Below, piece by piece: positions 7,218 to 30,613 of a stretch of DNA of 64,000 nucleotides. Location of the stretch: the sequence record NC_005083.2; one strand, given 5' to 3'. The notes beneath the pieces were generated by a model that saw only the letters and a list, made by a program, of their open reading frames with translations, did not search any database and was not told the origin of the DNA. The position numbers and the translations under genes were made by a program. The stretch's first letter is position 1. The number at the start of each line of letters is the position of its first letter.

Positions 7218-7246
7218 TTTCCGATGCGGGTTGTTACGACATCCCG

Positions 7247-7254
7247 CATAAATA
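7247..7254 (+). promoter_or_regulatory. T4-type late promoter variant
   Basis: CATAAATA overlapping a hairpin with TACG loop (7224..7249). Confidence 0.65.
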
Positions 7255-7286
7255 GTTCTATATGGACTAACAAGGAAATTACGACA

Positions 7287-7817
7287 ATGCCAACTCCTAC
7301 AACAGGTGCGATTTCAATCGGTACCGTTCGTGATTATTTCAGTAGAACCGGCGCTGCTTCATTGTCTCAGTACTACAGAGGCGGCGGTATTGTTCCTGAT
7401 ATTACTGAAAATGCTCACGTACCAACTTCAGGCGCGATTAGCTTGAATGACTTGCGCGGTGTATATCGCTTGTCAACGTATACGACATCATTTACGACAA
7501 CATACAACACCACTGTATCAACATCGAATACGACTTCGCGTAGTACATCAAGAAGTACAACTAGAAGTACTGCATACAGTACAACTCGCTCGACTGCGTA
7601 TACTACTAGTTGGACAACTAGCCGAACTACGTCGGTGACTAAAGGTTCGTATTCGACATCATACACGACTTCTCGTGCTACATCACGTTCAACATCATAT
7701 AGCACGACACGTTCAACAGCTTATACGTCTACGTGGACAACATCATGGACAACCACGTACAACACAACAGTATCAACATCAAACACAACTTCGCGAAGCA
7801 CGCAAGTTGCAGTTTAA
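7287..7817 (+). CDS. Ser/Thr-rich repeat protein, probable virion surface protein
   Basis: aagga RBS; N-terminal PTTGAIS..SLSQYYRGG..PTSGAISLNDLRG module; about two-thirds S/T in last ~114 aa. Confidence 0.75.
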   Translation: MPTPTTGAISIGTVRDYFSRTGAASLSQYYRGGGIVPDITENAHVPTSGAISLNDLRGVYRLSTYTTSFTTTYNTTVSTSNTTSRSTSRSTTRSTAYSTTRSTAYTTSWTTSRTTSVTKGSYSTSYTTSRATSRSTSYSTTRSTAYTSTWTTSWTTTYNTTVSTSNTTSRSTQVAV

Positions 7818-7829
7818 CAGGGTTAAATT

Positions 7830-8048
7830 ATGAGCTACAATGAAGAACACGAGAACCGAATCAACGAGCTTGAGAACAAGGTTTCAAAGCTTGAGTCGAT
7901 AATTGAAAATCTGGTCGAGTCAATGACTTCGAACAGCGAAGCTATTATCGAACATATTGCATCACTTGAGACCGAGAGGGATTCGATTCTTGCATCATAT
8001 GATGACAAACTTAATGAGATCGTGACCAAATATGAACCCAAGCAATAG
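7830..8048 (+). CDS. small acidic coiled-coil protein
   Basis: heptad-like INELENKVSKLESII. Confidence 0.6.
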   Translation: MSYNEEHENRINELENKVSKLESIIENLVESMTSNSEAIIEHIASLETERDSILASYDDKLNEIVTKYEPKQ

Positions 8049-8886
8049 AGAAATGACTGGGTTCAATAACATTTCTCGCACCGGTAAGTTGAAATTACAA
8101 TCCGATGCAGACAACGTCCGTGCCATGTGTATGGACGTTGTTCGTTTATTGAACTCTAAAAATATACCATCTAACTTCGACATCAATCACAATGACGGTG
8201 GTAACATCGGCGTGCATGAATGGGTGTCACAAATCCGCTTCATTCACTTGAAATACATGAACGTTAATTTCCAAACGAAGATTTTCAAGCATGCCTATCA
8301 TAACACTGAAAACGTCGTTGACTATTTTGACACGTTCAAACATTCTGACAAATATCATCTATCAGCGAAGCCTAGATTTTTAGAATATGAAAACGTCGTA
8401 TTTCTATGTGGATCGAATGTACTTGAATTGGCAATTGACTTTGACAAGATTGATACGCTGGTCGAACATTATCCCGATTTAGTGATCAAACCACACCCGA
8501 TTACGACGCTGTATTACATCAATATGCTTAAAACTCGATATGGATCGAAGCGCGTGCTTTCTCAGAAGATCAGCGGTGTTGATGTTCTTAAATCTGCTAA
8601 ACGTGTTTGGCTACCTTCAACGTCTGAGTTCTGGTTTAGTGCCTTGAACTACGACAAAGAAATCGGGTTTATCTCTAAAGATGGTTTCTGTGGAACGTAC
8701 ACGTCAATCATCAACGCAGTATGGGAATTGCATGAAGAAACCGGTGATCCATTGAAAGATATTGTGAATAAAATTATCTCGTCACCTTACTCAGGTCTGT
8801 ATGGTAGTATGGCAGACTTTGAAGAGCATCACGAGAAATACTGTAATGTGATTCTAGAACTAGGGGGTAATTTCGATAATGTATGA
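8032..8886 (+). CDS. capsule-biosynthesis-like (KpsS/GT-B type) glycosyltransferase candidate
   Basis: LVIKPHP motif followed by SGVDVL..AKRV...STSE pattern. Confidence 0.45.
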   Translation: MNPSNREMTGFNNISRTGKLKLQSDADNVRAMCMDVVRLLNSKNIPSNFDINHNDGGNIGVHEWVSQIRFIHLKYMNVNFQTKIFKHAYHNTENVVDYFDTFKHSDKYHLSAKPRFLEYENVVFLCGSNVLELAIDFDKIDTLVEHYPDLVIKPHPITTLYYINMLKTRYGSKRVLSQKISGVDVLKSAKRVWLPSTSEFWFSALNYDKEIGFISKDGFCGTYTSIINAVWELHEETGDPLKDIVNKIISSPYSGLYGSMADFEEHHEKYCNVILELGGNFDNV

Positions 8887-9511
8887 TTATGTAATTCACA
8901 CTTCGATTAGTGACAAAAGTCAGCTAAACCAACTAGTGATGTTTGTCGGGTCTTTCATCGAGACGCACAAAAAAGGTCGCGTGGTCTGCGTGACTGATCT
9001 TGAACTTGATTTCACGATGCCTCGACTGTCATTTGAGAAAAAACTACCCGAAGAGTACGTTTTCATTTCAGTTGACAATCTATTTTTACAAAAAACATAC
9101 GGCGTTGTTAGCTACATTGACAGTGGTACTTGGCGATGTACTTGGCAAAAGAATGATCATGATGATTTCGTCATTAAAAAGCATGGCGAAAGAAGCGGGT
9201 TGATTCACCCTGATATTGCAATTGCAAATTACAATGTTTCGAGACATGGCGATCTCGACATGTATTACAACGCGCTTCGTTACATTGAGAGCGCAATCAC
9301 GATCAACTGCAAAGACTTTGCCCCTGCTGCTGAGAATAAAATCAACAGCTTTTACACGCTTGTATTTCCATGGGAGATTTATTTTCACGTTATGATCACT
9401 TACCAAGAGTATATTGATTCTGAATACGTTGAGCGAGTTCGCGCTAACTGTCATAAGTTCGCACACTCGGTTTATTACAGAAAATCAGGGTTGTTACGTG
9501 ATGGGTTATGA
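8879..9511 (+). CDS. hypothetical protein, possible GT-A glycosyltransferase
   Basis: N-terminal beta-alpha-beta ending VVCVTD; SYIDS resembles DxD region; weak. Confidence 0.35.
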   Translation: MYDYVIHTSISDKSQLNQLVMFVGSFIETHKKGRVVCVTDLELDFTMPRLSFEKKLPEEYVFISVDNLFLQKTYGVVSYIDSGTWRCTWQKNDHDDFVIKKHGERSGLIHPDIAIANYNVSRHGDLDMYYNALRYIESAITINCKDFAPAAENKINSFYTLVFPWEIYFHVMITYQEYIDSEYVERVRANCHKFAHSVYYRKSGLLRDGL

Positions 9512-10184
9512 TGAGATAATTTTAGTATCTGGTCTTGATAGTTTAGTTCTATATGAATTTCTTGAACGAAAGCCACACCCTGTTTACTTTAAATGGGGTT
9601 TTGCTATCGACGACATTGAAATGGCTGCTTTGCCTGAAGAAACAACTATCATAGAAATGCCAGAGATTTTGCATTTGAAACATGATCCGTATGAGTTCAA
9701 GACACCAAGAAATCCCGATTTAATTGGTCGGAATACGTTGATGTTTAACTCAGTTTTCCATGCATTCAGACCAAACGTAATTTATCGCGGGATGTTGAAA
9801 GGTGATGATTTCTATTACGACGCATCGCCTACGCATTCAGATGAAATCGCAGCTATGTGGTCGAAAATGCTGAATAAAGAGTGTCGAATTGAACAACCGT
9901 TCAAAGACAAAACGAAACGTGACATAATGCAAATGGCGGTCGAATACGGTATTGATGCGAATTCATTACAGCATTGTTACAATCGAGAACACAACTGCGG
10001 TCGATGTAGCAAGTGTGTGGATGCACATGTTAATTCTATGTACACCGACAACCCAGACATCATGTGGCTGAAACGAATAGTTAATGACTCGGGTATGGCA
10101 TCATTGGCTAATCACATGTTTGGTGTTGATACAGTTGACAGAATAAAGGAATTTCTAGATGAATTTGATCGAACAGACTGCTGA
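9501..10184 (+). CDS. QueC-like PP-loop ATPase
   Basis: SGLDS, GRN, TKRDI, CY..CGRCSKC. Confidence 0.8.
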   Translation: MGYDEIILVSGLDSLVLYEFLERKPHPVYFKWGFAIDDIEMAALPEETTIIEMPEILHLKHDPYEFKTPRNPDLIGRNTLMFNSVFHAFRPNVIYRGMLKGDDFYYDASPTHSDEIAAMWSKMLNKECRIEQPFKDKTKRDIMQMAVEYGIDANSLQHCYNREHNCGRCSKCVDAHVNSMYTDNPDIMWLKRIVNDSGMASLANHMFGVDTVDRIKEFLDEFDRTDC

Positions 10185-11052
10185 TAAATTCGAGCATAGT
10201 TACCGAGAAGACGTTCAAGGCGTACAGTGGTATTTCGGTAGTCGAACGCATGATTTTTATCTGTATGGAATAGACTCTCTTATTGATAAAGTCAAAGACT
10301 GTGATTTTATTGAAATCAAGCATGTTCAAGAGGGTACGCTGGTTAAACGAGGCGAAGCTGCGGTCACGGTTACGATTACAGATCATAGTCGTATCGCATA
10401 TGGGAACATGATTGAAACATTGTTGTACAATGAGTTGTGGTATTCGAGCACGGTCGGTACGATTTTACACCGTTGTCTTGATGTGTTGCATGAAAACGGC
10501 TATGACGCTCGTTCAGCATACCCTCAAATCGGACGGGCGAGTTCAACGCCAGAACAGTCAGCTAAAGCAAGGGATGTGTTCGCACGTATATTTTATCAAT
10601 CGTCGAATGAGAAAATACCCGTTGCGATGCACAGTGATATTTTAATCAACGGTGAGGAATATTGCATGGAACATTATAACGGCATCATGATTGATACTTT
10701 CGATAAGCAAGCTTGCATTGACTTGATCAACAAGAAAGACTTTCGAGGGACTGTGATGGTTGACTCTCAGCCAATAATTGAAACAATTGAGAGAGTTCTA
10801 GCTGAAACAAAATGCTTTGTTGCACAAGCTGAAAGTGTTACACTCGATGAGTGGATAGAGATAGTGCGACATTTTAAAGGCAATAAGCGAATTTTCTACG
10901 GGATTGGTAGCTTTGCATTTAGCAATATATCACGAGACACATTTGGTTTGATTTACAAAGTGTGTGCAGTTAAGAAAAACGACAACTGGATCGGAGTTTC
11001 AAAGATGACGACAGGTAAACAAACATCGGCTGGTTATAAGGTTATAGGTTAG
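10159..11052 (+). CDS. divergent, shortened NAMPT/NAPRT-like phosphoribosyltransferase
   Basis: EGTLV, ETLL..LWYSSTV.T, GRASS.E, IDTFD, RDTFG..YK motifs align with 14214..15707. Confidence 0.7.
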   Translation: MNLIEQTADKFEHSYREDVQGVQWYFGSRTHDFYLYGIDSLIDKVKDCDFIEIKHVQEGTLVKRGEAAVTVTITDHSRIAYGNMIETLLYNELWYSSTVGTILHRCLDVLHENGYDARSAYPQIGRASSTPEQSAKARDVFARIFYQSSNEKIPVAMHSDILINGEEYCMEHYNGIMIDTFDKQACIDLINKKDFRGTVMVDSQPIIETIERVLAETKCFVAQAESVTLDEWIEIVRHFKGNKRIFYGIGSFAFSNISRDTFGLIYKVCAVKKNDNWIGVSKMTTGKQTSAGYKVIG

Positions 11053-11054
11053 TT

Positions 11055-12044
11055 ATGAATTATTGTATAGCGCCGTTTACATCGCCGTCTATTACACCAG
11101 ACGGTTTTAAAATTTGCAGCATGCCAGGTCAGAAAGTATACCCTGATATTTCATTCTGGAATAGTGATGAAGTGATCAAGATTCGCGAACAGATTATCGC
11201 TGGTGAAATTCCTGAATCGTGCAAGGCATGTCGTAGTATGCGTGACGGGTTGATTGTGTCAAAAGAAAAACCAACTGATACTCATGTTGACTTGAATTTC
11301 AAAGCTCTTTACATTGCGCGGTCGAACAAGTGTGAATATGCTTGTGAAATGTGCAGTTCATCAATCTCACATAGCTATGACAAGAAATACAATGACGGTA
11401 AGTTGGGGATTATTGAGAATGACTTTGATGTTATTCCGTATCTGCACGAAACACAAGCCGTTGCTATTTCGGGCGGGAACCCTGTCATTGACAAAAAGGT
11501 TGCAGAGATTCTTGAGAATCTAGACCCTGACGTGGTAGAACGTTTCATTATTACTTCAAATGGGACAGTCTTTCCAGACAGATTCTTGAATGCAATTAAG
11601 AGATTGAAATGTGACGCGACTTTGATATTCTCTATGGACGGACCGAAAGAGTTTAATGAAGTGGTTCGATCTGGTGCGAAGCAAGAGAGAATCTATCGCA
11701 CCATTAATCGAGTTCTTGACGAGATTGAAGATTACCCAAACTTGCATGTGGCAATTGAGTATACTTTCACGAATAAGTCAATTCATCACTACGTTGATTT
11801 GTATGATGAAATGCTCTTCGAGATCAACCCGAAGCATTTGAAAAACAACTCAGTTAAAGTGATTGCGAATATGTGTACATACCCGCATCACCTTAGCGTT
11901 ACAACTGTTCCCAAAACCGTCATTGATGACATATTGTTCAATCAGTTGCCGTATTTGAGACAGCAACCCAGCCCATTGTCAAATCAATTCAAACTTGGCT
12001 ATGATAAGTTTTTGACTCAGTATCACAACAGCGTGATTATGTGA
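11055..12044 (+). CDS. radical SAM protein with N-terminal Cys (SPASM/twitch-like) segment
   Basis: CEYACEMC, SGGNP, TSNGT, SMDG. Confidence 0.85.
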   Translation: MNYCIAPFTSPSITPDGFKICSMPGQKVYPDISFWNSDEVIKIREQIIAGEIPESCKACRSMRDGLIVSKEKPTDTHVDLNFKALYIARSNKCEYACEMCSSSISHSYDKKYNDGKLGIIENDFDVIPYLHETQAVAISGGNPVIDKKVAEILENLDPDVVERFIITSNGTVFPDRFLNAIKRLKCDATLIFSMDGPKEFNEVVRSGAKQERIYRTINRVLDEIEDYPNLHVAIEYTFTNKSIHHYVDLYDEMLFEINPKHLKNNSVKVIANMCTYPHHLSVTTVPKTVIDDILFNQLPYLRQQPSPLSNQFKLGYDKFLTQYHNSVIM

Positions 12045-13161
12045 TCAGATCATACGCTTTGATATGTGAGTAAAACTCTGGACACGCAGACGATAAATTA
12101 GTTTTCGTCTTCGTGTCTATTCTTTTGTTAAGAACAAAGAATTCAGGGTTGAATTTACAAACACTGTGTTCCAGAGTAAGACATTCAGCAACGTGCTTAA
12201 ATGGTCTAGCCAAATCCTCACGCCCATCTTTTAAATACGCTTCTTCTTTCACTTTGAATCTTGATAATAGCTGGTCTCGAAATGCAACTGGAATGTTGTA
12301 AATTGAGTATGGATTATCAGGCTCACCGACGACATGCACAGACAAACGTACACGTTTACCATCATAAAGCGAATCAAAATCTGAAACCAATGTTTCAAGA
12401 TGTTCAAGAGTCACGTTTGACACGGTCGCAGTGATAACTACATCAAAGTGTTGCTTGATGACTTCAATGTTTGATTTGACTTTTTTGATGTCTGCAAACA
12501 ATCGAATATAATCTTGGTATTCTCGTAGACCGTCGATTGATACGAACACCGTTGATGCATTAGCTTCTTTAAGCGATTTGATGAGATCTGAGCCATCGGC
12601 TAACACTAGTGATGAGCCATTCGTGAAAATATTCACTGCGGCTTTAATGTCGCCTACGTTGCGAAGAACTTCAGGAGCATTTGACGAGCGGGTAATTTCA
12701 CCGCCTAGAATTGTCAATGACGAAAGTCCTTTGCTGATTGTGTTGATTGTCGTACTCAAATCATTGAATCGAGTACTTGAATCTTCTTCATTGAACAATC
12801 TAGCCTTCAAGTCTGATAATTTGCTGTAGCAGTAACGACAAGCTTGATTACATTCATTACTAGGGAATACTTGTAGCCAGCGAACTGAATCAGCGGGCAT
12901 AATAGGTGAAACTTCAGAATCGTGTTCTGTTAGACGCTGTGGGTCATTATCAGTAATGCACATTTGACATGCCTTTGACAGCTTGCTCATGTCGTGGTTT
13001 AGCATTGCTTCACGATAAGCGACAAGCTTTTCATCATTCCAAGCGTCTGCTAGTGTTTTTTCATCAGTAAACCATTCATAATCAGCCGAACAGCAAAACG
13101 TAATTTGATTGTTTGCTCGTGTGATGAACTGCTTGAACGGCATATAACATAGTGGTTTCAT
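12037..13161 (-). CDS. radical SAM protein
   Basis: CNQACRYC, LGGE, FTNGS, SIDG; N-terminal C..CC..C..C. Confidence 0.85.
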   Translation of the reverse strand: MKPLCYMPFKQFITRANNQITFCCSADYEWFTDEKTLADAWNDEKLVAYREAMLNHDMSKLSKACQMCITDNDPQRLTEHDSEVSPIMPADSVRWLQVFPSNECNQACRYCYSKLSDLKARLFNEEDSSTRFNDLSTTINTISKGLSSLTILGGEITRSSNAPEVLRNVGDIKAAVNIFTNGSSLVLADGSDLIKSLKEANASTVFVSIDGLREYQDYIRLFADIKKVKSNIEVIKQHFDVVITATVSNVTLEHLETLVSDFDSLYDGKRVRLSVHVVGEPDNPYSIYNIPVAFRDQLLSRFKVKEEAYLKDGREDLARPFKHVAECLTLEHSVCKFNPEFFVLNKRIDTKTKTNLSSACPEFYSHIKAYDLIT

Positions 13162-13171
13162 GTTTCTGTCC

Positions 13172-13744
13172 TTAGTTAAAAATGCTACTTGTATATATAG
13201 CAGTCTTCAGGGCATTGAAATGATCGTCAACTCTATTCACGTGTATGCATTCAATGTCAAATCTTTCTTGGATTTCTCGGATGTTGTCTAGCGAGTCGTC
13301 GATGAAGTATTTCACCTCATGCAGTTCACACAGCTTCTCGACATACTTTGCCTTCGAGTCGAAGTACTCAATCGAAATCACCTCACTTATCATCCCTGGG
13401 AATAACGCATTTAGATTATACACGCGATTTGACCATGAAGTTCTACTCATGCTGAACTTGGTTAGTGCAATGATGTTATATCGGTCTGAGAGTTCGCGTA
13501 ACGCATCGTAAGCGTCTTCATATGCGGGTATGTACTTTGCACACTCATGTTCATTGTATGCGCCTATAAGCTTTCCTAGTTGCATGTCACTCACGTTAAT
13601 AAATAAAGAGCGTGCATCGGTATCAGTATTTGAACCGTTGATATTCAAATTATCAAGCATGCCTAATTGCATCATGAAGAATGGCAAGTTGGCTTTCCAG
13701 TTAAGCAAAACCCCGTCTACATCTATGATGATCGTCTTTTTCAT
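13172..13744 (-). CDS. HAD-superfamily phosphatase (T4 gp30.2-like)
   Basis: DVDGVL and FIDD motifs. Confidence 0.75.
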   Translation of the reverse strand: MKKTIIIDVDGVLLNWKANLPFFMMQLGMLDNLNINGSNTDTDARSLFINVSDMQLGKLIGAYNEHECAKYIPAYEDAYDALRELSDRYNIIALTKFSMSRTSWSNRVYNLNALFPGMISEVISIEYFDSKAKYVEKLCELHEVKYFIDDSLDNIREIQERFDIECIHVNRVDDHFNALKTAIYTSSIFN

Positions 13745-14213: not shown

Positions 14214-15707
14214 ATGCTAAATCTTAATCAAAATATCGCAATCGCAACTGACAGCTACAAAGTTTCACACTGGTCTCAATTCCCTCGTGGTCTAGAGTAC
14301 AGCCAATATTACGTCGAAAGCCGGGGTGGTAAGTTCGACAAAATTATGGTCGATGGTATGGCATACATGTGTCGTATTCTCGAAAAAGGTGTTTCGATGA
14401 ACGATGTCAAGCGTGCGAAACGTCTGTTCAAAAAGCACTTCGGTTCTGAAGTCTTCAATGACAAGGGTTGGGACATCATCGTTAACGAACTGAAAGGCAA
14501 ACTGCCTATTAAGATTCGTGCGGTCAAAGAAGGTACTGTAGTACCAGTTAAACACCCTATCTTGACGATTGAGAACACAGATCCGCGTTTTGGTTGGCTG
14601 CCTGGCTATCTTGAAACGTTCATCTTGCGTGCTCTTTGGTACCCGACAACTGTAGCAACGATCTCGTTCGAAGTGAAGAAAATCATTCGCCAATTCATGA
14701 AGAAGACGGTTGATGATGAACGCATTGCAGAACAAGAGCCGTTCAAACTTCACGACTTTGGTTCTCGTGGTGTATCAAGTGGCGAATCTGCGGCTATCGG
14801 CGGCTCTGCTCACTTGAAAAACTTCTTGGGTACTGACACTGTAGAAGCACTTGTTGCAGTTGAAGAACTTTACGCTGAAGATGTTGAAGACTTCATTGCA
14901 GGATTCTCAATCCCTGCACGTGAACACTCAACAACTACAATCTACAAAGAAGCTGGTGAAGACCAAGCATTCTTGAACTCTATTGAGCAATGGGGTGCTG
15001 CATTATACGCTTGTGTAATGGACAGCTACGACTACGAAGCAGCAATGAATCGTGTCTCGACTGGTCGCTTCAAAGAGCTAATCATCAGCAAAGGCGGTAC
15101 GTTTGTTGCTCGTCCTGACTCTGGTGTGCCTGTAGATGTAGTAATGAAAGGTCTTGAGATTCTTGGTAAAAACGTTGGTTATACAATCAACAGCAAGGGT
15201 TACAAAGTATTGCACCCTAGCTACCGTATCATTCAAGGTGACGGCGTGAACATCGAAGAAATTCGTCGAATCTTGTCTTACATGGAAAGTAAAGGCTGGT
15301 CGGCAGAAAATATTGCATTCGGTATGGGTGGCGGGTTGCTTCAACAACTTGACCGTGATACTCAACGCTTTGCAATGAAAATGTCAGCGGCAATCATCAA
15401 CGGCGAATACGTTAGCGTGTTCAAAATGCCGAAGACTGATCCGACAAAAGCATCAAAAGCAGGTTTCTTGGATTTGATTGCAGTTGATGCAGACAATCCG
15501 AACCCAGCGGCTCGTGGTTACGTGACGTTCTCTTCTGAAGATTACGACAATCGCGTACACCCGAAAAGCGTGATGCAGACAATCTTCGAAGACGGTGTAA
15601 CAGTTGCCGACTTCTCACTAGAAGAAGCGCGTAAACTGTCTGACGTACAAGCTGATTTCCTGAACGAAGGTGAATGGAAAATCGCGAAAAAGATTCAAAC
15701 TGCGTAA
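14214..15707 (+). CDS. nadV: nicotinamide phosphoribosyltransferase
   Basis: TDSYKVSH, LHDFGSRG, AREHS, RPDSG, IQGDG, FGMGGGLLQ..RDT. Confidence 0.95.
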   Translation: MLNLNQNIAIATDSYKVSHWSQFPRGLEYSQYYVESRGGKFDKIMVDGMAYMCRILEKGVSMNDVKRAKRLFKKHFGSEVFNDKGWDIIVNELKGKLPIKIRAVKEGTVVPVKHPILTIENTDPRFGWLPGYLETFILRALWYPTTVATISFEVKKIIRQFMKKTVDDERIAEQEPFKLHDFGSRGVSSGESAAIGGSAHLKNFLGTDTVEALVAVEELYAEDVEDFIAGFSIPAREHSTTTIYKEAGEDQAFLNSIEQWGAALYACVMDSYDYEAAMNRVSTGRFKELIISKGGTFVARPDSGVPVDVVMKGLEILGKNVGYTINSKGYKVLHPSYRIIQGDGVNIEEIRRILSYMESKGWSAENIAFGMGGGLLQQLDRDTQRFAMKMSAAIINGEYVSVFKMPKTDPTKASKAGFLDLIAVDADNPNPAARGYVTFSSEDYDNRVHPKSVMQTIFEDGVTVADFSLEEARKLSDVQADFLNEGEWKIAKKIQTA

Positions 15708-19418: not shown

Positions 19419-19444
19419 AAAAGGGAGCACTAAGCTCCCTTTCT
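19418..19444. terminator. bidirectional terminator
   Basis: A run-gggagc-acta-agctccc-T run between convergent genes. Confidence 0.75.
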
Positions 19445-20496
19445 CATTTCACCATTTTGATTTGAATCTGATTGTCCATGTAAGCCATTTTCTTTTCAAA
19501 TTCAACATCATATTCTGGTCGATGTTCGTATTCGACTGAAAGCATTTGCTTCAGACAACGGTACAATTCCGACTTGTAATACCCTTCTTTCATTCCCTTC
19601 ATCTGTTCATATTGCTTTTTCATAGCAGCTTTGATTATCTTCGGGTCCATGAATTTGATTGACATTTCTCGCGGTGCTTTTACTGTGCCAAAGTCAACAA
19701 ACACCTGAGCCTTTTCAGCTACTTGAATGAAGTCATAAATCGTGTCATAACTCATTCGACTTAGCGTGTGGTGCATACAAACATGTTTGCTATGTTCTTT
19801 TAGCAACGGTACATTTGCAAGCATCAAGTCGTGGTCGATGTTCTGACGAATGTATTCGTTGCGCTCTTTTCCGCCGTCACATGAAATTGTAAACACTAGA
19901 CGATGTTTGTACTTTTTACATATGGCTAGAATCTTCTTCGCAAGTGGCGTATGCAACACAGTACCATTTGTCAGAATGTAAACTTCCGCATTTGTTTCTT
20001 CCATGACTTCAGTCAGAACTTCGACTGTTCTCTTGTCCATGAACGGTTCGCCGCCGTATAGCACAACAGTTTCAACACCCTTCGGGATACTGAAATCGAG
20101 TTGTGTGTAATCGTAATGGTCGTCAATGTCATACAAGTCCATGTATGTTTTGCTATTCTTGCCATAGCACATTCGACACGCTAGGTTACATTTGTTTGAC
20201 ATCAATATTTGAATTGTTCTAGGATGCTCTTCGAGTGCTTCATATTCGAAGTACTTCTGATCAGACAATTCGCCATAACTCATACATTCTTTGCAGTATT
20301 CTGGTAAAGTGTCATACTCAAACATTTTGGCACGATGTTCATTGATGATGTCACTGTGCCACCAGTCTTCAACGTTCGGGAATGGTTCACTTAGCTGAGA
20401 ACAGCAAATGTGATACCCATCAGGTTTTGCGTCACGTGTATTAAAGGGAGAGCCACAAAGTGGTCTCTTCCCGTCTTTAAATCCGAATTTATCCAT
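19444..20496 (-). CDS. radical SAM protein with N-terminal Cys segment
   Basis: CNLACRMC, YGGEPF, LTNGT, SCDG. Confidence 0.85.
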   Translation of the reverse strand: MDKFGFKDGKRPLCGSPFNTRDAKPDGYHICCSQLSEPFPNVEDWWHSDIINEHRAKMFEYDTLPEYCKECMSYGELSDQKYFEYEALEEHPRTIQILMSNKCNLACRMCYGKNSKTYMDLYDIDDHYDYTQLDFSIPKGVETVVLYGGEPFMDKRTVEVLTEVMEETNAEVYILTNGTVLHTPLAKKILAICKKYKHRLVFTISCDGGKERNEYIRQNIDHDLMLANVPLLKEHSKHVCMHHTLSRMSYDTIYDFIQVAEKAQVFVDFGTVKAPREMSIKFMDPKIIKAAMKKQYEQMKGMKEGYYKSELYRCLKQMLSVEYEHRPEYDVEFEKKMAYMDNQIQIKMVK

Positions 20497-20789
20497 TAAT
20501 CTAGCTCATCAAGAAGTGATTGAAATTCCTCGTCGCGTTCAGCGTCGATTGTACCAGTCATCAACTCTGTTAGAGTCTTCAACGACTTGATCTCTGGTGG
20601 TTGAGGGCGTAGATCTTCGAGAATGTGAATGATTGACTCGGCTGGGAGATCGTGATTTACGATCTCATCTGGCAGGTGGTGTTTGTAAACGCAGTCGTCG
20701 CCCCAATCAATAACTACTGCATGTTCCCATTTGTCGATTTCTAGTATTTTAAAATTTGGTTTCATCATAAGCCCCAGAGTTCTTTCCAA
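20496..20789 (-). CDS. hypothetical protein
   Basis: coupled between glycosyltransferase and radical SAM genes. Confidence 0.55.
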   Translation of the reverse strand: MERTLGLMMKPNFKILEIDKWEHAVVIDWGDDCVYKHHLPDEIVNHDLPAESIIHILEDLRPQPPEIKSLKTLTELMTGTIDAERDEEFQSLLDELD

Positions 20790-21766
20790 TGTGTTTTAGC
20801 ATCTTGTCGATACTTCTCAATGTCAAATTTTTGATATTTCTGTTCGATTGCATCATCAATGACGCGAATCAACGTATCATTGTTTATATCAGCACGAATC
20901 ACTGGGAAAATAAAATCCCTTGTGTAAGGTGCGTCATGCTGAACAATACAAGGTATGTACTGACATGCTTCTAATAACGCATATGGCATAATCTCGATTC
21001 TAGACATATGAAGCAAAACTTTACTTTTCATCATATGTGCCATGACTCGCTCACGCCGCTGACAAGTTTCGACTATACAATCAACACCATTCGGGATTCT
21101 TATTGATTCGGTTGTGAATAGACGAATTTTAAGACCGCTGTATGCAAGCGCGTTTAGCATTTCGGGTATCTGCTTACGTTTGTATGCACCTGACACGATA
21201 ATCACGTCAGACTCTTCAGCAGCGTCAATATCAGCTTGTGATATGGACGGAAGCTCAAAAGGTTCAAATGCAGTCACATGTTTGCCACCGATTACTTCTC
21301 GACCCCATTGTGCAATCCCGTTCGATTGAGCAATGTTAGTGACTAATGACGTTGACATCATGTGTCGCCATTGAGGTAAGTTGTAAATTTGATGAATGTC
21401 CATGTATTCGCGATATGAATCTGGTACTATCAAGTCACCGAAATGATGTTGGTTGTAACAACGGCGCTTCGCTTCGATACATGCGCGGAGTGCTTCATAT
21501 GAATGCGTATAGATAATCGCTTCGCTATCAATCGCGTTGATAACCATTGCGTTTGCCTTGTAGTCTTTATAAGACCGTTTCGTTAAAATGAAGTCACACC
21601 CGAAATCCCATTTACTCACGTGCGGACACGATTCGTCTCCGAGTACAATAACTTTGACATCACAGTTTAGTGATTGCATTAAACGAACGTGATCTTGAAT
21701 GAATGTGTAAATACCGCCGCCAATTCCCAACATAAAGTCAGTTACTACGTAGCGAACTTTTTTCAT
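20765..21766 (-). CDS. GT-B glycosyltransferase (GT4-like)
   Basis: GIGGG near N-terminus; SRIE..P...LEA nucleotide-sugar motif. Confidence 0.75.
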   Translation of the reverse strand: MKKVRYVVTDFMLGIGGGIYTFIQDHVRLMQSLNCDVKVIVLGDESCPHVSKWDFGCDFILTKRSYKDYKANAMVINAIDSEAIIYTHSYEALRACIEAKRRCYNQHHFGDLIVPDSYREYMDIHQIYNLPQWRHMMSTSLVTNIAQSNGIAQWGREVIGGKHVTAFEPFELPSISQADIDAAEESDVIIVSGAYKRKQIPEMLNALAYSGLKIRLFTTESIRIPNGVDCIVETCQRRERVMAHMMKSKVLLHMSRIEIMPYALLEACQYIPCIVQHDAPYTRDFIFPVIRADINNDTLIRVIDDAIEQKYQKFDIEKYRQDAKTHWKELWGL

Positions 21767-29731: not shown

Positions 29732-30613
29732 ATGCAGGTAAGATGGACAGAAATGTTTTACAGCATTCAAGGCGAAGGGAAATACACTGGTCAAGCTAGT
29801 TTGTTCTTTCGCTTCTGGGGTTGTAACTTAGAATGTCACGGCTTCGGGCAAGAAGATCCGACGAATAAAGATACATGGGTATTAGACTTCAAAGACTACG
29901 ACCCGAAAGCGAACAACGTGACTTCAGTCGAAGATCTGCCTGTATGGACTCGTGGATGTGACTCTTCTTACACGTGGGCTAAAAAGTATGCTCATCTTGC
30001 TTCAAAGTCTGAAGTCGCAGATGTATGCGAAGCAATGCTTGAGAAACTGCCTAATCGAGTTTGGGGAGATATTCATTGGGTAATTACAGGTGGTGAGCCG
30101 ATGATGAATCAAGCTCAAATCATCGAAATGATGAATTACTTCATCAAAATTGACAATTATCCAAAACATGTCACGATTGAAACTAATGGTACGCGAGAAC
30201 TCAAGCCAGAATTTGCAGAGCGTTGGGCGCTAATTCAGTGGAATACGCATCGTAATGTTCACTTGAGTTTCAGCGTGTCGGCTAAGTTGTACAACGTAAC
30301 TGGCGAAGTGCATGAAAAAGCAATCAAGCCAAAAGTTGTCAACCAGTATGCACGCATCGGAGAAGTCTGGCTAAAGCCAGTCGTCGTAGACAAGGAAGCG
30401 TGTTGGGACGAGCTTGATATTGTGATCGCACAGTTCAAAGCAGAACGCAACTTACACAACGTTCCGGTGTATATCATGCCATGTGGCGCTACTCAAGAAG
30501 AGCAAGAGCAAGATGGTTATATGGCGTCAATCGCAGGGAAAGCATTGGCGCGTGGTTACAACGTTTCTGTACGAACTCACGTATGGATTTGGGGTAACGC
30601 GGTGGGCACGTAA
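29732..30613 (+). CDS. queE: 7-carboxy-7-deazaguanine synthase (radical SAM)
   Basis: EMFYSIQGEG, RFWGCNLEC..CDS, TGGEP, IETNGT. Confidence 0.88.
   Translation: MQVRWTEMFYSIQGEGKYTGQASLFFRFWGCNLECHGFGQEDPTNKDTWVLDFKDYDPKANNVTSVEDLPVWTRGCDSSYTWAKKYAHLASKSEVADVCEAMLEKLPNRVWGDIHWVITGGEPMMNQAQIIEMMNYFIKIDNYPKHVTIETNGTRELKPEFAERWALIQWNTHRNVHLSFSVSAKLYNVTGEVHEKAIKPKVVNQYARIGEVWLKPVVVDKEACWDELDIVIAQFKAERNLHNVPVYIMPCGATQEEQEQDGYMASIAGKALARGYNVSVRTHVWIWGNAVGT

Follow-up and report, generated by a model that had tools for sequence, protein, structure and literature searches.

The closest described relatives of the locus considered here belong to bacterial anti-phage immunity. In type IV CBASS, the QueC-family ligase Cap9 (with Cap10) conjugates 7-carboxy-7-deazaguanine to the N-terminus of the CD-NTase. 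Cap9 and QatC alike attach 7-carboxy-7-deazaguanine to the N-termini of proteins, with N9 of the base left free for ribosylation. The deazaguanine is contacted in Cap9 by L83, R86, Y115, and D117, and the S18A/S23A double mutant of this enzyme is inactive (10.1101/2025.04.06.647259). Conjugation of nucleobases to proteins by the QueC family was shown only in 2025-2026, in bacterial anti-phage systems. Vibrio phage KVP40 encodes a QueC-like protein as well, and its gene is followed by one for a compact phosphoribosyltransferase (PRTase) that resembles nicotinamide phosphoribosyltransferase (NAMPT). Literature searches on the pair, on the PRTase-like protein KVP40.0259, and on adhesin modification returned no description of this pair.

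The window, which is the whole 64,000-nucleotide stretch of DNA that was analysed, corresponds to positions 124001-188000 of the KVP40 genome (NC_005083.2; 100% identity). The two genes of the pair are as follows:

KVP40.0258, 9498..10184, plus strand: QueC-family, Cap9-like PP-loop protein; the loop is a variant (V-S-G-L-D-S), a Cys4 motif for zinc is present, and helices extend the C-terminus.
KVP40.0259, 10159..11052, plus strand: type II phosphoribosyltransferase with a NAMPT fold, compact at 297 aa.

The RefSeq start of KVP40.0258 is a GTG at 9498, while the ORF list begins the same frame at 9501. The 3' end of KVP40.0258 and the 5' end of KVP40.0259 share 26 nt (ORFs 9501-10184 and 10159-11052), and a start/stop overlap of 1-35 nt is found wherever the QueC-like and PRTase-like genes adjoin. 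The same 35 Vibrio phage records hold both genes. Furthermore, the pairwise identities of the QueC-like proteins and those of the PRTase-like proteins are correlated across 10 genomes (r = 0.92), indicating that the two have diverged together. The pair is best read as a two-enzyme module that is co-inherited and translationally coupled. The initial annotation of this DNA had likewise described the two enzymes as coupled, and their conservation and co-divergence in distant phages bear this out.

The KVP40 genome also encodes a conventional version of each protein. A canonical full-length QueC (KVP40.0124; 183 bits), which the initial annotation had missed, lies at genome positions 73681-74397 in a folE/queF-like/queC cluster. 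An intact NadV of 497 aa (NAMPT_N and NAPRTase domains) is encoded at 14214-15707, 3.2 kb downstream of the pair, matching the intact NAMPT that had been noted about 3 kb away. Since a canonical QueC and NadV are found elsewhere in the genome, both genes of the pair are divergent second copies. The QueC-like gene had also been described as lying 20 kb from queE. A QueE-like gene is indeed present about 19.5 kb from the pair (29732-30613; weak, sub-threshold QueE matches and a QueE-like annotation in RefSeq), but the distance carries no weight.

The family of KVP40.0258 was probed with sequence profiles and a predicted structure. The Pfam QueC match passes its threshold (37 bits) but is limited to residues 76-173, and the score against the QueC equivalog model TIGR00364 is 28.7 bits, short of the cut-off of 150.3. 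The 190-position QueC model of PADLOC matches near the full length of the protein (48.7 bits). Among PDB sequences the best match to the single protein is Cap9 (9nto_B; E 1e-5), and a profile of the KVP40.0258 family aligns almost without gaps to the same chain at 51.7 bits (E 8.5e-13), with QueC behind at 40.6 and 35.7 bits. QatC was matched neither by the family profile among PDB sequences nor by the PADLOC QatC model. The model of KVP40.0258 has a QueC/Cap9 fold (pLDDT 86.6), and in Foldseek searches with this model Cap9 is one of the two best fold matches and has the lowest rmsd (3.7; TMt 0.69), while QatC ranks 32nd. The protein is 227 aa long, with about 50 extra helical residues at the C-terminus relative to Cap9. 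Results from PADLOC, the PDB match, and the fold thus place KVP40.0258 in the QueC/Cap9 family, consistent with the earlier suggestion that the PRTase is partnered with an amide-forming enzyme.

The zinc site (C159, C166, C169, and C172) is invariant in the KVP40.0258 family, as are G11, D13, S14, P133, and K139. L74, R77, Y105, and D107 align with the four deazaguanine contacts of Cap9 in the order given above, and these positions are occupied across the family by L, R, Y/F, and D/E. The canonical QueC motifs YxQxHxxE, VPxRN, and YPDC survive as W-G-F-x5-E, G-R-N/D/S, and Y/F-x-D/E, respectively. The PP-loop, in contrast to the canonical SGGxDS, reads [V/I/M]-[S/G]-G-x-D-S; the first serine is lost family-wide, and the position equivalent to Cap9 S18 is V, I, or M. 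Given this replacement and the inactivity of the Cap9 double mutant, the use of ATP may be altered or lost. The annotation shows neither queD nor queE as a neighbour of KVP40.0258, and no CD-NTase, Cap10, or Cap11 was found nearby in the annotation or in PADLOC scans of the neighbours. By sequence and fold, KVP40.0258 is closer to Cap9 than to QueC.

KVP40.0259 passes the Pfam threshold for NAPRTase (28.5 bits) and matches PHROG 448, a nicotinamide PRTase group, with an E-value of 4e-37. The AF2 model (pLDDT 96.8, pTM 0.92) is a compact NAMPT fold in which the type II PRTase architecture, an N-terminal sandwich followed by an alpha/beta barrel, is predicted to be present. Foldseek returns human and murine NAMPT as the best folds, and the top matches are all NAMPT (E about 1e-17, TMq 0.77-0.84). 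The Pfam scan gave no match to the NAMPT_N domain (PF18127), and the score against NF006629, 63.5 bits against a cut-off of 405, does not reach that of the curated NAMPT family. KVP40.0259 is about 200 aa shorter than NadV: it lacks the greater part of the N-terminal helical region, several loops of the barrel, and the last 75 residues at the C-terminus. It shares 24-33% identity with KVP40's own NadV. In the alignment of the two, LHDFGSRG of NadV faces AYPQIGRA and RPDSG faces MVDSQ, essentially as the initial annotation had claimed for a shortened NAMPT relative with changes in HDFGSRG and RPDSG.

A comparison of 57 sequences, drawn from the short family and from ordinary NAMPTs, reveals that H158, D179, D202, R259, K267, and K282 are invariant and that R29, R126, and K287 are nearly so. 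In alignments with human NAMPT these residues fall on its active-site positions, and the equivalents of H247, R40, R196, D313, R392, K400, K415, and K423 are kept in KVP40.0259; we take the first of these to be the autophosphorylated His and the others to be ligands of PRPP and the 5'-phosphate. The nicotinamide contacts F193, D219, and R311 are replaced in all members of the short family, the first by Q, K, C, or H, the second by variable residues, and the third by M, I, or L, and the equivalents of D354 and of the GGG-loop are not conserved.

In a quick IQ-TREE search, rooted at the midpoint only, 11 QueC-linked PRTases form one clade (SH-aLRT 99), and the NadV of KVP40 falls among 47 ordinary NAMPTs on the other side of that branch. 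The clade of KVP40.0259 is old and separate from ordinary NAMPT/NadV. Members of the short family keep a constant length of 294-303 aa at 35-51% identity in other phages, and a dN/dS of about 0.07 against phage QD01 indicates purifying selection. In the record of phage phi-pp2, a 1-nt insertion truncates the copy of KVP40.0259. When IMG/VR, GTDB genomes, and JGI metagenomes were scanned for patterns from the PRTase family alignment, only ordinary NadV/NAMPT genes were returned. The fourth-best hit of an exhaustive search (P0010) was rejected as a translated tandem DNA repeat on a contig read with TGA=W, its score being an artefact of repeat summing. Phylogeny and active-site models had been proposed as checks on the idea of a neofunctionalised PRTase. 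The short PRTases do branch apart from ordinary NAMPTs, a confident NAMPT-type fold was obtained for KVP40.0259 and a QueC/Cap9 fold for KVP40.0258, and the PRPP and phospho-His machinery is retained while the nicotinamide contacts are lost. KVP40.0259 is a well-folded PRTase of its own clade and neither a pseudogene nor an ordinary NAPRT or NAMPT. For a deazapurine as the base, which the initial annotation had offered as an example, support is indirect only and comes from the Cap9-type deazaguanine contacts kept in the QueC-like protein.

In KVP40 the pair is part of a larger cassette, and the other genes of the locus are as follows:

KVP40.0254, 7287..7817, plus strand: adhesin-like protein; Ser/Thr/Arg-rich repeats follow an N-terminal module that is also present in adhesin-like proteins from other phages.
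KVP40.0255, 7830..8048, plus strand: 72 aa, coiled-coil-looking, conserved in the D484 group.
KVP40.0256, 8032..8886, plus strand: glycosyltransferase-like; Pfam GT52 at 19.5 bits, below cut-off.
KVP40.0257, 8879..9511, plus strand: 210 aa, possibly a GT-A/GT8-like fold (weak lead).
KVP40.0260, 11055..12044, plus strand: radical SAM protein directly 3' of the PRTase-like gene; Pfam Radical_SAM at 37.8 bits.
KVP40.0261, 12037..13161, minus strand: second twitch-type radical SAM protein, convergent with KVP40.0260.
KVP40.0262, 13172..13744, minus strand: HAD-like (T4 30.2-like) putative phosphatase; weak Pfam Hydrolase match, PHROG 420.

KVP40.0254 is annotated from 7224; its likely start is Met22 at 7287, and the QD01 homologue is annotated from MPTPTTG. 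KVP40.0255 is 44% identical to the C-terminus of a 127-aa ORF of D484. KVP40.0256 has an Atlas structure similar to the KpsS/LipB family (TM 0.57) and shares 36% identity with its D484 homologue. KVP40.0257 gave no Pfam or NCBIfam match, and its low-confidence Atlas model has a TM of 0.45-0.5 to GT8/nucleotide-diphospho-sugar transferases. Both of these genes are confined to the Vibrio-phage version of the cassette. The radical SAM protein KVP40.0260, for which the closest model is that of the N-terminal twitch-domain radical SAM proteins (NF033640; 118.6 bits, below cut-off), is kept in D484, F86, and QD01. In D479 a HAD gene lies directly 3' of the PRTase-like gene. The cassette is surrounded by metabolic genes of early/middle type (nadV, nrdAB) and lies outside the structural module. 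No T4-type late promoter motif (TATAAATA) was found near the cassette, and sigma-70 promoter and terminator scans around it gave results at chance level. Among public RNA runs, none was found that covers the region. The VH7D-type relatives are without the whole 6.5-kb cassette, of which KVP40.0262 forms the end, and carry the N-terminal adhesin module on a different C-terminal domain. In this comparison of KVP40 with VH7D, the pair travels with the type of adhesin C-terminal domain.

The recurrent siting of the pair beside tail-fibre adhesin genes, which the initial annotation did not mention, is the strongest clue to its function. The pair is also present in the metagenomic phage contigs L010, L012-14, L016, L017, and L019, down to 22-27% BLAST identity and at GC contents from 42 to 59%. 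The six other phage contexts include T4-like, GpJ-encoding, and SU10-adaptor-encoding phages. The pair is among or beside tail-fibre genes in all six (Peptidase_S74, GpJ, Collar, and tail-fibre PHROG matches), and in five it lies directly 3' of an adhesin-like gene, the products of which have one N-terminal module in common. This module (..TGAIS..; ..SGAISLNDLRG..) is encoded 5' of the pair in L010, L019, L012, and L017, and the N-terminal module of KVP40.0254 is also found in D484, F86, and D479. In L010 and L019 the pair sits between two fibre genes. The fetched flanks of the other phage contigs contain fibre genes and no NAD genes. The glycosyltransferase-like and HAD genes are missing from the five non-Vibrio contexts, in which the pair is found alone or together with a small radical SAM gene. 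The pair is repeatedly joined by redox enzymes (radical SAM, 2OG-oxygenase-like).

Recurrence of the pair next to adhesin genes in very different phages suggests that phages use undescribed chemistry of these two enzymes on or for their receptor-binding fibres. KVP40.0254 is a candidate target or beneficiary of the cassette. A search of the adhesin-like proteins for a conserved N- or C-terminal acceptor residue or an obvious acceptor site found none. A 'gp38-like' label for the adhesins was set aside as weak: PF05268 appears in a precomputed table only and was not reproduced in a fresh Pfam scan, and the match of the adhesin to S16 gp38 in a PDB sequence search was not significant. An orphan member of the PRTase family (P0009) is found on a contig of bacterial appearance, where the nearest 8 kb hold no QueC-like gene.

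The reading we favour, to which we give slightly less than an even chance, is that the pair constitutes an active ligase and phosphoribosyltransferase module that assembles a conjugate of a base and (phospho)ribose, on the adhesin or for it; we infer the catalysis, the base, the order of the steps, and the target. The module would act as an accessory of tail-fibre adhesin loci. The QueC-like protein, as a putative Cap9-type ATP-dependent carboxylate-amine ligase, would activate a heteroaromatic carboxylic acid by adenylation and couple it to an amine. For this acid the best candidate is 7-carboxy-7-deazaguanine, a product of KVP40's own deazaguanine pathway as well as of the host. The compact NAMPT-like protein would serve as an active PRPP-dependent N-phosphoribosyltransferase, the base pocket of which appears to be rebuilt for a nucleophile other than nicotinamide. 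The joint product would be a base-carboxamide (phospho)riboside, either attached to the adhesin-like protein of the gene immediately upstream (KVP40.0254 in KVP40) or used for it. In KVP40, further elaboration of this product would fall to the cassette's glycosyltransferase-like, radical SAM, and HAD genes.

It is possible, if doubtful, that the adhesins themselves are decorated with a nucleobase or nucleotide, with the Cap9-like ligase attaching a 7-deazaguanine-carboxyl group or related base that the NAMPT-fold PRTase then phosphoribosylates. If true, phages would apply the chemistry of type IV CBASS and Qat immunity to their own virions as well, as a new protein modification. The pair would be the first phage-side relative, with a PRPP transferase in place of the TGT-like partner. 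It is also tied to the genes on which host recognition depends. The pair defines a minimal NAMPT fold, about 300 aa in length, in which the phosphoribosyl machinery is kept and the base pocket is rebuilt; this is of interest for PRTase enzymology and engineering.

Other explanations were weighed against this adhesin-linked ligase and transferase module. One is a sugar-type modification of the fibre or of a glycan in which no nucleobase takes part: the PRTase-like protein would move 5-phosphoribose to an adhesin or glycan hydroxyl or amine, a phosphatase would trim it to ribofuranose, and the QueC-like protein would amidate a sugar or protein carboxylate, similar to sugar amidotransferases of the WbpG/PseA type. 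PRPP-dependent ribofuranosylation followed by a phosphatase is known in capsule and O-antigen synthesis, the superfamily PF06508 includes N-sugar amidotransferases, and the cassette of the KVP40 type includes two glycosyltransferase-like genes and one for a HAD-like putative phosphatase, which in D479 is next to the PRTase gene. However, these added genes are missing from the five non-Vibrio contexts, KVP40.0258 resembles Cap9/QueC with its base-stacking and acid residues kept and lacks a WbpG-type motif order, and we know of no ribofuranosyltransferase with a NAMPT fold. We regard this explanation as unlikely.

Also rather improbable is a small-molecule or counter-defence role, wherein the pair converts or drains a soluble metabolite such as 7-carboxy-7-deazaguanine, or makes a nucleotide analogue, and its siting near fibre genes reflects a hotspot for accessory genes. 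Immunity by Cap9 and QatC needs 7-carboxy-7-deazaguanine, NAD and deazaguanine metabolism are already served by genes in KVP40, and both the metabolic surroundings of the KVP40 cassette, with no late promoter motif nearby, and the one orphan homologue outside any phage context are consistent with such a role. The association with tail-fibre genes in every other phage context and the way in which the pair follows the type of adhesin C-terminal domain (KVP40 versus VH7D) argue against it.

A third explanation, that two former enzymes serve as non-catalytic scaffolds or chaperones for adhesin folding or attachment, draws on the position of the pair, which is where fibre helper genes sit (the gp38/gp57-type helpers of T-even phages), and on the loss of the first PP-loop serine and of several NAMPT substrate contacts. 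This is quite improbable, as residues needed for chemistry only are invariant at 22-30% identity in the PRTase (the phospho-His, five or six phosphate-binding Arg/Lys, and D313) and invariant also in the QueC-like protein (the loop D-S, R77, K139, and the zinc cysteines), and redox enzymes repeatedly accompany the pair.

Less still can be said for a miniature Preiss-Handler route to NAD, in which nicotinate mononucleotide formed by the short PRTase is amidated to NMN by the PP-loop enzyme, complementing NadV and NatV. The PRTase has its closest relatives in NAMPT/NadV, the nadV gene is 3 kb from the pair, and PP-loop enzymes such as NadE amidate pyridine carboxylates. This route is nonetheless very improbable: F193, D219, and R311, which provide pyridine stacking and the amide/carboxylate contacts, are replaced, the clade stands apart from NAMPT, the partner is QueC/Cap9-like and not NadE-like, and the flanks on other phage contigs hold fibre genes and no NAD genes. 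Finally, there is next to no chance that KVP40.0259 is a decaying nadV duplicate, a pseudogene or non-functional remnant as the initial annotation had considered, since the reduced length, the missing canonical motifs, and the truncated phi-pp2 copy are set against a compact, confidently predicted fold, purifying selection, steady length, an old and separate clade, and low identity to KVP40's own NadV.

The favoured module can be compared with known systems on both sides of the pair. With Cap9, KVP40.0258 shares a minimal QueC core that is not interrupted by a long insert, the Cys4 site for zinc, and the base-contact residues (R86, Y115, and D117 in Cap9), and as in the case of Cap9 and the TGT-like Cap10, the ligase is partnered with a family that makes N-glycosidic bonds to a base. 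In contrast to the Cap9 system, the KVP40 pair is phage-encoded rather than part of a defence operon, without the CD-NTase, Cap10, and Cap11 genes, and the partner is a NAMPT-fold PRTase. Moreover, both serines are present in the Cap9 loop, LxSGGxDS, whereas the KVP40.0258 family is without the first and carries the additional helical tail of about 50 aa. QatC of the QatABCD defence system is also a QueC-superfamily protein repurposed for protein modification and paired with a partner protein, QatB. However, QatC, encoded beside qatA/B/D, is a protein of about 400 aa with N- and C-terminal extensions and motifs of its own in which the canonical QueC substrate motifs are lost, in comparison to 227 aa for KVP40.0258, and it has no sequence link to the phage protein (PADLOC, PDB) and a distant fold rank. 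Canonical QueC has the same fold and zinc motif, and the Arg of VPxRN and the Tyr and Asp of YPDC are kept in modified form; the variant PP-loop, the sub-cut-off TIGR00364 score, and the missing queD and queE neighbours set KVP40.0258 apart.

KVP40.0259 resembles NAMPT/NadV in its predicted type II PRTase fold and in the conserved phospho-His and PRPP/5'-phosphate ligands, and differs in its shorter chain, its replaced nicotinamide contacts, and its separate clade. Unlike NadV of the NARP2 NAD-salvage pathway, it is paired with a QueC-like gene and not with an NMN adenylyltransferase. The biosynthesis of tubercidin and toyocamycin involves PRPP-dependent formation of a deazapurine nucleotide by TubE/ToyH, together with the QueC-type enzyme ToyM and a HAD phosphatase. 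The PRTases of these pathways are type I (APRT-like) and not NAMPT-fold enzymes, and their genes are found in antibiotic clusters of actinomycetes, unconnected with phage fibres. The set of activities, in which a QueC-type enzyme and a phosphatase accompany a PRTase that acts on a 7-deazaguanine, is nevertheless the same in its logic as that proposed for KVP40.

The two ORFs recognized in the initial annotation, a QueC-like gene and a 297-aa NAMPT-like (PRTase-like) gene, lie in an 8-kb stretch that matches Vibrio phage KVP40 (NC_005083.2) at 100% identity, where window base 1 is genome base 124001. The observation, including the presence of an intact NadV, the ordinary NAMPT of KVP40, was confirmed:

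9498 (RefSeq GTG) or 9501 (ATG of the initial annotation, same frame) to 10184: KVP40.0258, annotated "QueC-like"
10159-11052: KVP40.0259, 297 aa, annotated hypothetical protein with a PF04095 match
14214-15707: intact NadV, 497 aa, NAMPT_N and NAPRTase domains
29732-30613: QueE-like gene

KVP40.0258 and KVP40.0259 overlap by 26 nt. In Pfam, the former matches QueC (37 bits, confined to residues 76-173) and the latter NAPRTase (28.5 bits), while PHROGs assigns them to phrog_1550 (QueC-like) and phrog_448 (nicotinamide PRTase), respectively. A canonical full-length QueC (183 bits) is also encoded at genome positions 73681-74397, inside a folE/queF-like/queC cluster invisible to the initial annotation; a core FolE/QueD/QueE/QueC/DpdA set has been reported for Schizotequatroviruses (PMC12028318). 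Because KVP40 possesses this canonical QueC in addition to the intact NadV, KVP40.0258 and KVP40.0259 are divergent second copies.

The main new result is that the pairing of these genes is conserved. A tblastn search of 50,697 phage records placed the two genes in one and the same set of 35 Vibrio phage records, where identity drops to 49-51% in the PRTase-like protein and to 39-44% in its QueC-like partner. The pair members are separated by one extra gene in the group of phages D484 and F86, and overlap in phage D479. The intervening gene weakly matches a PHROG (E 6.7e-5) whose members are probably 2OG-oxygenase-like. The surroundings of distant relatives recovered by the profile search show the pair again, in unrelated metagenomic phage contigs with a GC content of 42 to 59%, which were read within 8 kb of the pair genes.

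Gene order at the pair in metagenomic phage contigs
L010: two giant fibre proteins (Peptidase_S74), 291-aa Gly-rich protein, QueC-like (225 aa), PRTase-like (296 aa), Collar-domain protein
L019: 1341-aa fibre protein, 83-aa ORF, 310-aa Gly-rich protein (PF05268 GP38 in a precomputed table), QueC-like (235 aa), PRTase-like (298 aa), S74 protein
L012: 1211-aa S74 fibre protein, 166-aa protein, then the module QueC-like, small radical SAM, PRTase-like (386 aa), second QueC-like (same module in L013 and L014)
L016: 675-aa tail fibre protein, QueC-like (237 aa), PRTase-like (397 aa), internal virion protein, tail tip protein
L017: GpJ, two S74 fibre proteins, 319-aa Gly-rich protein, QueC-like, small radical SAM, PRTase-like (404 aa), endolysin

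In these contigs the QueC-like proteins are homologous to KVP40.0258, at 27-37% BLAST identity, and carry its variant loop; adjacent pair genes share a stop/start overlap of 1-35 nt. Across 10 genomes, the pairwise identities of the two proteins correlate with r = 0.92; these pairs are not independent, and the value shows co-inheritance and nothing beyond it. The small radical SAM proteins within the modules at L012:6525-9874 (also in L013 and L014) and L017:6591-9215 have 251-288 aa and a CxxxCxxC motif, and weakly match the cluster region of the RlmN/Cfr adenine C-methylating enzymes. The second QueC-like paralogue of L012 is 51% identical to the first.

The status of KVP40.0259 was probed by structure prediction, substitution rates and phylogeny. 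The protein is 24-33% identical to KVP40's own NadV, and the motif replacements reported in the initial annotation are present in the alignment of the two. It is approximately 200 aa shorter than NAMPT/NadV, with the N-terminal helices, barrel loops and C-terminal 75 residues trimmed. Its AlphaFold2 model (57-sequence alignment) has a pLDDT of 96.8 and a pTM of 0.92, and the top Foldseek matches are all NAMPT structures (E about 1e-17, TMq 0.77-0.84). Relative to the homologue in phage QD01 (76% amino-acid identity), dN/dS is about 0.07, a rough value as dS is saturated, although far below 1; for the adjoining genes of the cassette the values are 0.05-0.15. When 1.84 billion representatives were searched exhaustively with a profile, only 181 matches reached E <= 1e-3. 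The close ones comprised two further short proteins, of 296 and 303 aa, together with three proteins of 386-404 aa, and ordinary NAMPTs (~465 aa) came next in rank at 66 bits or less. In the IQ-TREE phylogeny, a quick search with midpoint root that shows separation and not evolutionary direction, a branch with SH-aLRT 99 sets the 11 PRTase-like family members apart, the short forms group within them as a sub-clade (SH-aLRT also 99), and KVP40 NadV falls among the 47 ordinary NAMPTs. The initial annotation had allowed that the ORF might be a decaying pseudogene or cluster with ordinary enzymes; the confident fold, the low dN/dS and the separate clade contradict gene decay, and the family stands apart from ordinary NAMPTs.

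Several individual sequences merit separate mention. In Vibrio phage phi-pp2 (JN849462.1), one extra A at about nt 622 of the homologue of 10159-11052 puts the PRTase-like gene out of frame, and its annotated product has 210 aa; the isolate has either truly lost the gene or been mis-sequenced at this base. A 303-aa member of the short PRTase family (L011:8001-8912), located beside a transposase and a group II intron reverse transcriptase on a 196-kb, 60%-GC, bacterial-looking contig, has no QueC-like gene within 8 kb and is the sole exception to the pairing. A called 1877-aa "protein" (L018:6001-11634), readable only with TGA=W, is a translated tandem DNA repeat that reached 180 bits in the profile search by summing 34 repeat matches, and was rejected as a false positive.

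The residues of KVP40.0259 divide into two sets. H158, D179, D202, R259, K267 and K282 are invariant across 57 sequences, and R29, R126 and K287 are nearly so. In HMMER alignments to human NAMPT the conserved set falls on H247, D313, R392, K400, K415, R196 and K423, while R29 corresponds to R40 as read from the FGSR/FECR alignment. In NAMPT these positions comprise the histidine that is autophosphorylated and the residues that bind the pyrophosphate and 5'-phosphate of PRPP. All family members have other residues at the nicotinamide contacts (F193 by Q/K/C/H, D219 variably, R311 by M/I/L), and the equivalents of D354 and the GGG loop are likewise unconserved. This pattern is that expected of an enzyme that would still use PRPP with another nucleophile, its catalytic activity being putative.

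The closest relative of KVP40.0258 in the PDB is Cap9, the QueC-family ligase of type IV CBASS, which was its only sequence match (9nto_B, E 1e-5). The family profile gave 51.7 bits with Cap9, almost gapless, 40.6 and 35.7 bits with two QueC structures, and no match in the PDB to QatC of the Qat defence system. The PADLOC 190-position "QueC" model matches KVP40.0258 nearly end to end (48.7 bits). The AF2 model (pLDDT 86.6) has an additional C-terminal helical tail; its best fold matches are QueC and Cap9, with the lowest rmsd to Cap9 (3.7 A). In Cap9, the conjugated deazaguanine is contacted by L83, R86, Y115 and D117, and S18, D22 and S23 form the PPi loop (10.1101/2025.04.06.647259). The base contacts align with L74, R77, Y105 and D107 of KVP40.0258, all kept (L, R, Y/F and D/E across the family), and the zinc Cys4 site is retained with them. 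The loop residues align with V9, D13 and S14. Since the first serine is V, I or M in every family member, its loss is a family trait and not decay.

The pair sits among tail-fibre genes, usually right after an adhesin-like gene. An N-terminal module (..G.IS[LM]....LRG..) is common to the proteins encoded immediately upstream of the pair, to the Ser/Thr/Arg-repeat protein KVP40.0254, which heads the KVP40 cassette, and to ORFs left unannotated in the corresponding position of D484, F86 and D479. Radical SAM or oxygenase-like companions recur with the pair. The KVP40 cassette itself is not part of the block of structural genes, and its surroundings contain no late-promoter motif. The "gp38" label is weak, as the PF05268 match was not reproduced in our own Pfam scan and the match to S16 gp38 was not significant. 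Features of this neighbourhood include:

7224-7817 (window): KVP40.0254; annotated start probably 21 codons early, as the QD01 homologue begins MPTPTTG (window 7287)
L002:3409-3942 (D484), L003:3347-3841 (F86), L004:4110-4622 (D479): intact adhesin-like Ser/Thr/Arg-repeat ORFs upstream of the enzyme cassette, 170-177 aa in D484 and D479; unannotated in public records or replaced there by tiny annotated fragments
L019:6827-7078 (83 aa), L017:5325-5585 (86 aa): signal-peptide proteins adjoining adhesin-like genes, possibly lipoproteins, in the place of the receptor-blocking lipoproteins of some phages
L024:12974-14075 (phage VH7D): 177-aa N-module protein, then a 167-aa signal-peptide protein annotated PagP-like
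19444-21766 (window, minus strand): KVP40.0272, the third radical SAM gene of the twitch type, accompanied by a small ORF and a gene annotated with PF00534 (Glycos_transf_1); possibly another modification cassette, 6 kb past nadV

In VH7D-type relatives of KVP40, the complete 6.5 kb spanning the GT-like to the HAD gene is missing, and the N-module is carried on the 177-aa protein with another C-terminal domain. The arrangement in VH7D resembles an alternative adhesin module occupying this locus. When KVP40 is compared with QD01, the cassette proteins (7224-13744) are 69-86% identical with saturated dS, whereas the flanking NadV is 96% identical with a dS of 0.39. This contrast marks an abrupt transition from a fast-diverging module to the core genome, and it is the way a host-range module behaves.

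The analysis establishes two proteins, one of the Cap9/QueC family and one of the NAMPT family, that are folded, selected, inherited together and encoded in synteny with adhesin loci, and it is highly probable that they constitute a functional module linked to those loci. It is proposed that KVP40.0258 would adenylate a heteroaromatic acid and join it to an amine, that KVP40.0259 would place 5-phosphoribose on a ring nitrogen, and that the product would end on the adhesin or serve it. The ATP-loop and zinc residues of the ligase are largely intact, as are the PRPP and phospho-His residues of its partner, and the case that both enzymes are active with ATP and PRPP is slightly better than even. 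The mechanism as a whole is more tentative, falling a little short of an even chance. The best single candidate for the acid is 7-carboxy-7-deazaguanine, because the ligase retains the Cap9 base contacts, the compound is made by both KVP40 and its hosts, and its N9 is free for ribosylation, as the Cap9 authors noted for the conjugated base (10.1101/2025.04.06.647259); deazaguanine as the actual base is nonetheless rather unlikely. Two rivals carry equal, low weight. In one, the fibre or its glycan would be ribosylated and amidated with no nucleobase involved, against which the kept base contacts stand. The other, a soluble-metabolite or counter-defence role, may be weighed between the position of the KVP40 cassette outside the structural block and the recurrent fibre synteny. 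Non-catalytic assembly factors, less probable, lie between the altered loop serine and the otherwise retained ligand residues. A nicotinate route to NMN would draw on the NAMPT fold, set against the replaced nicotinamide pocket. Gene decay of KVP40.0259 is the weakest rival, opposed by dN/dS, pLDDT and the separate clade.

Compared with known systems, the pair's proteins fall outside canonical QueC, QatC and NAMPT/NadV in architecture, curated scores, base contacts and clade, and KVP40.0258 differs from Cap9 in the strict sense by its altered loop and by lacking a neighbouring CD-NTase or Cap10. The PF06508 clusters set out in a 2026 survey are those of QueC, QatC, Cap9, LarE, sugar amidotransferases and GMP synthase, none of them phage, fibre-linked or PRTase-linked, and the literature searched yielded no account of the pair or of enzymes associated with adhesin genes in such a manner. 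The pair is related to known QueC-family conjugation systems, and plausibly works like Cap9 and like a PRTase through putative activities; it would be categorically new if nucleotide-type modification of a phage adhesin were demonstrated.
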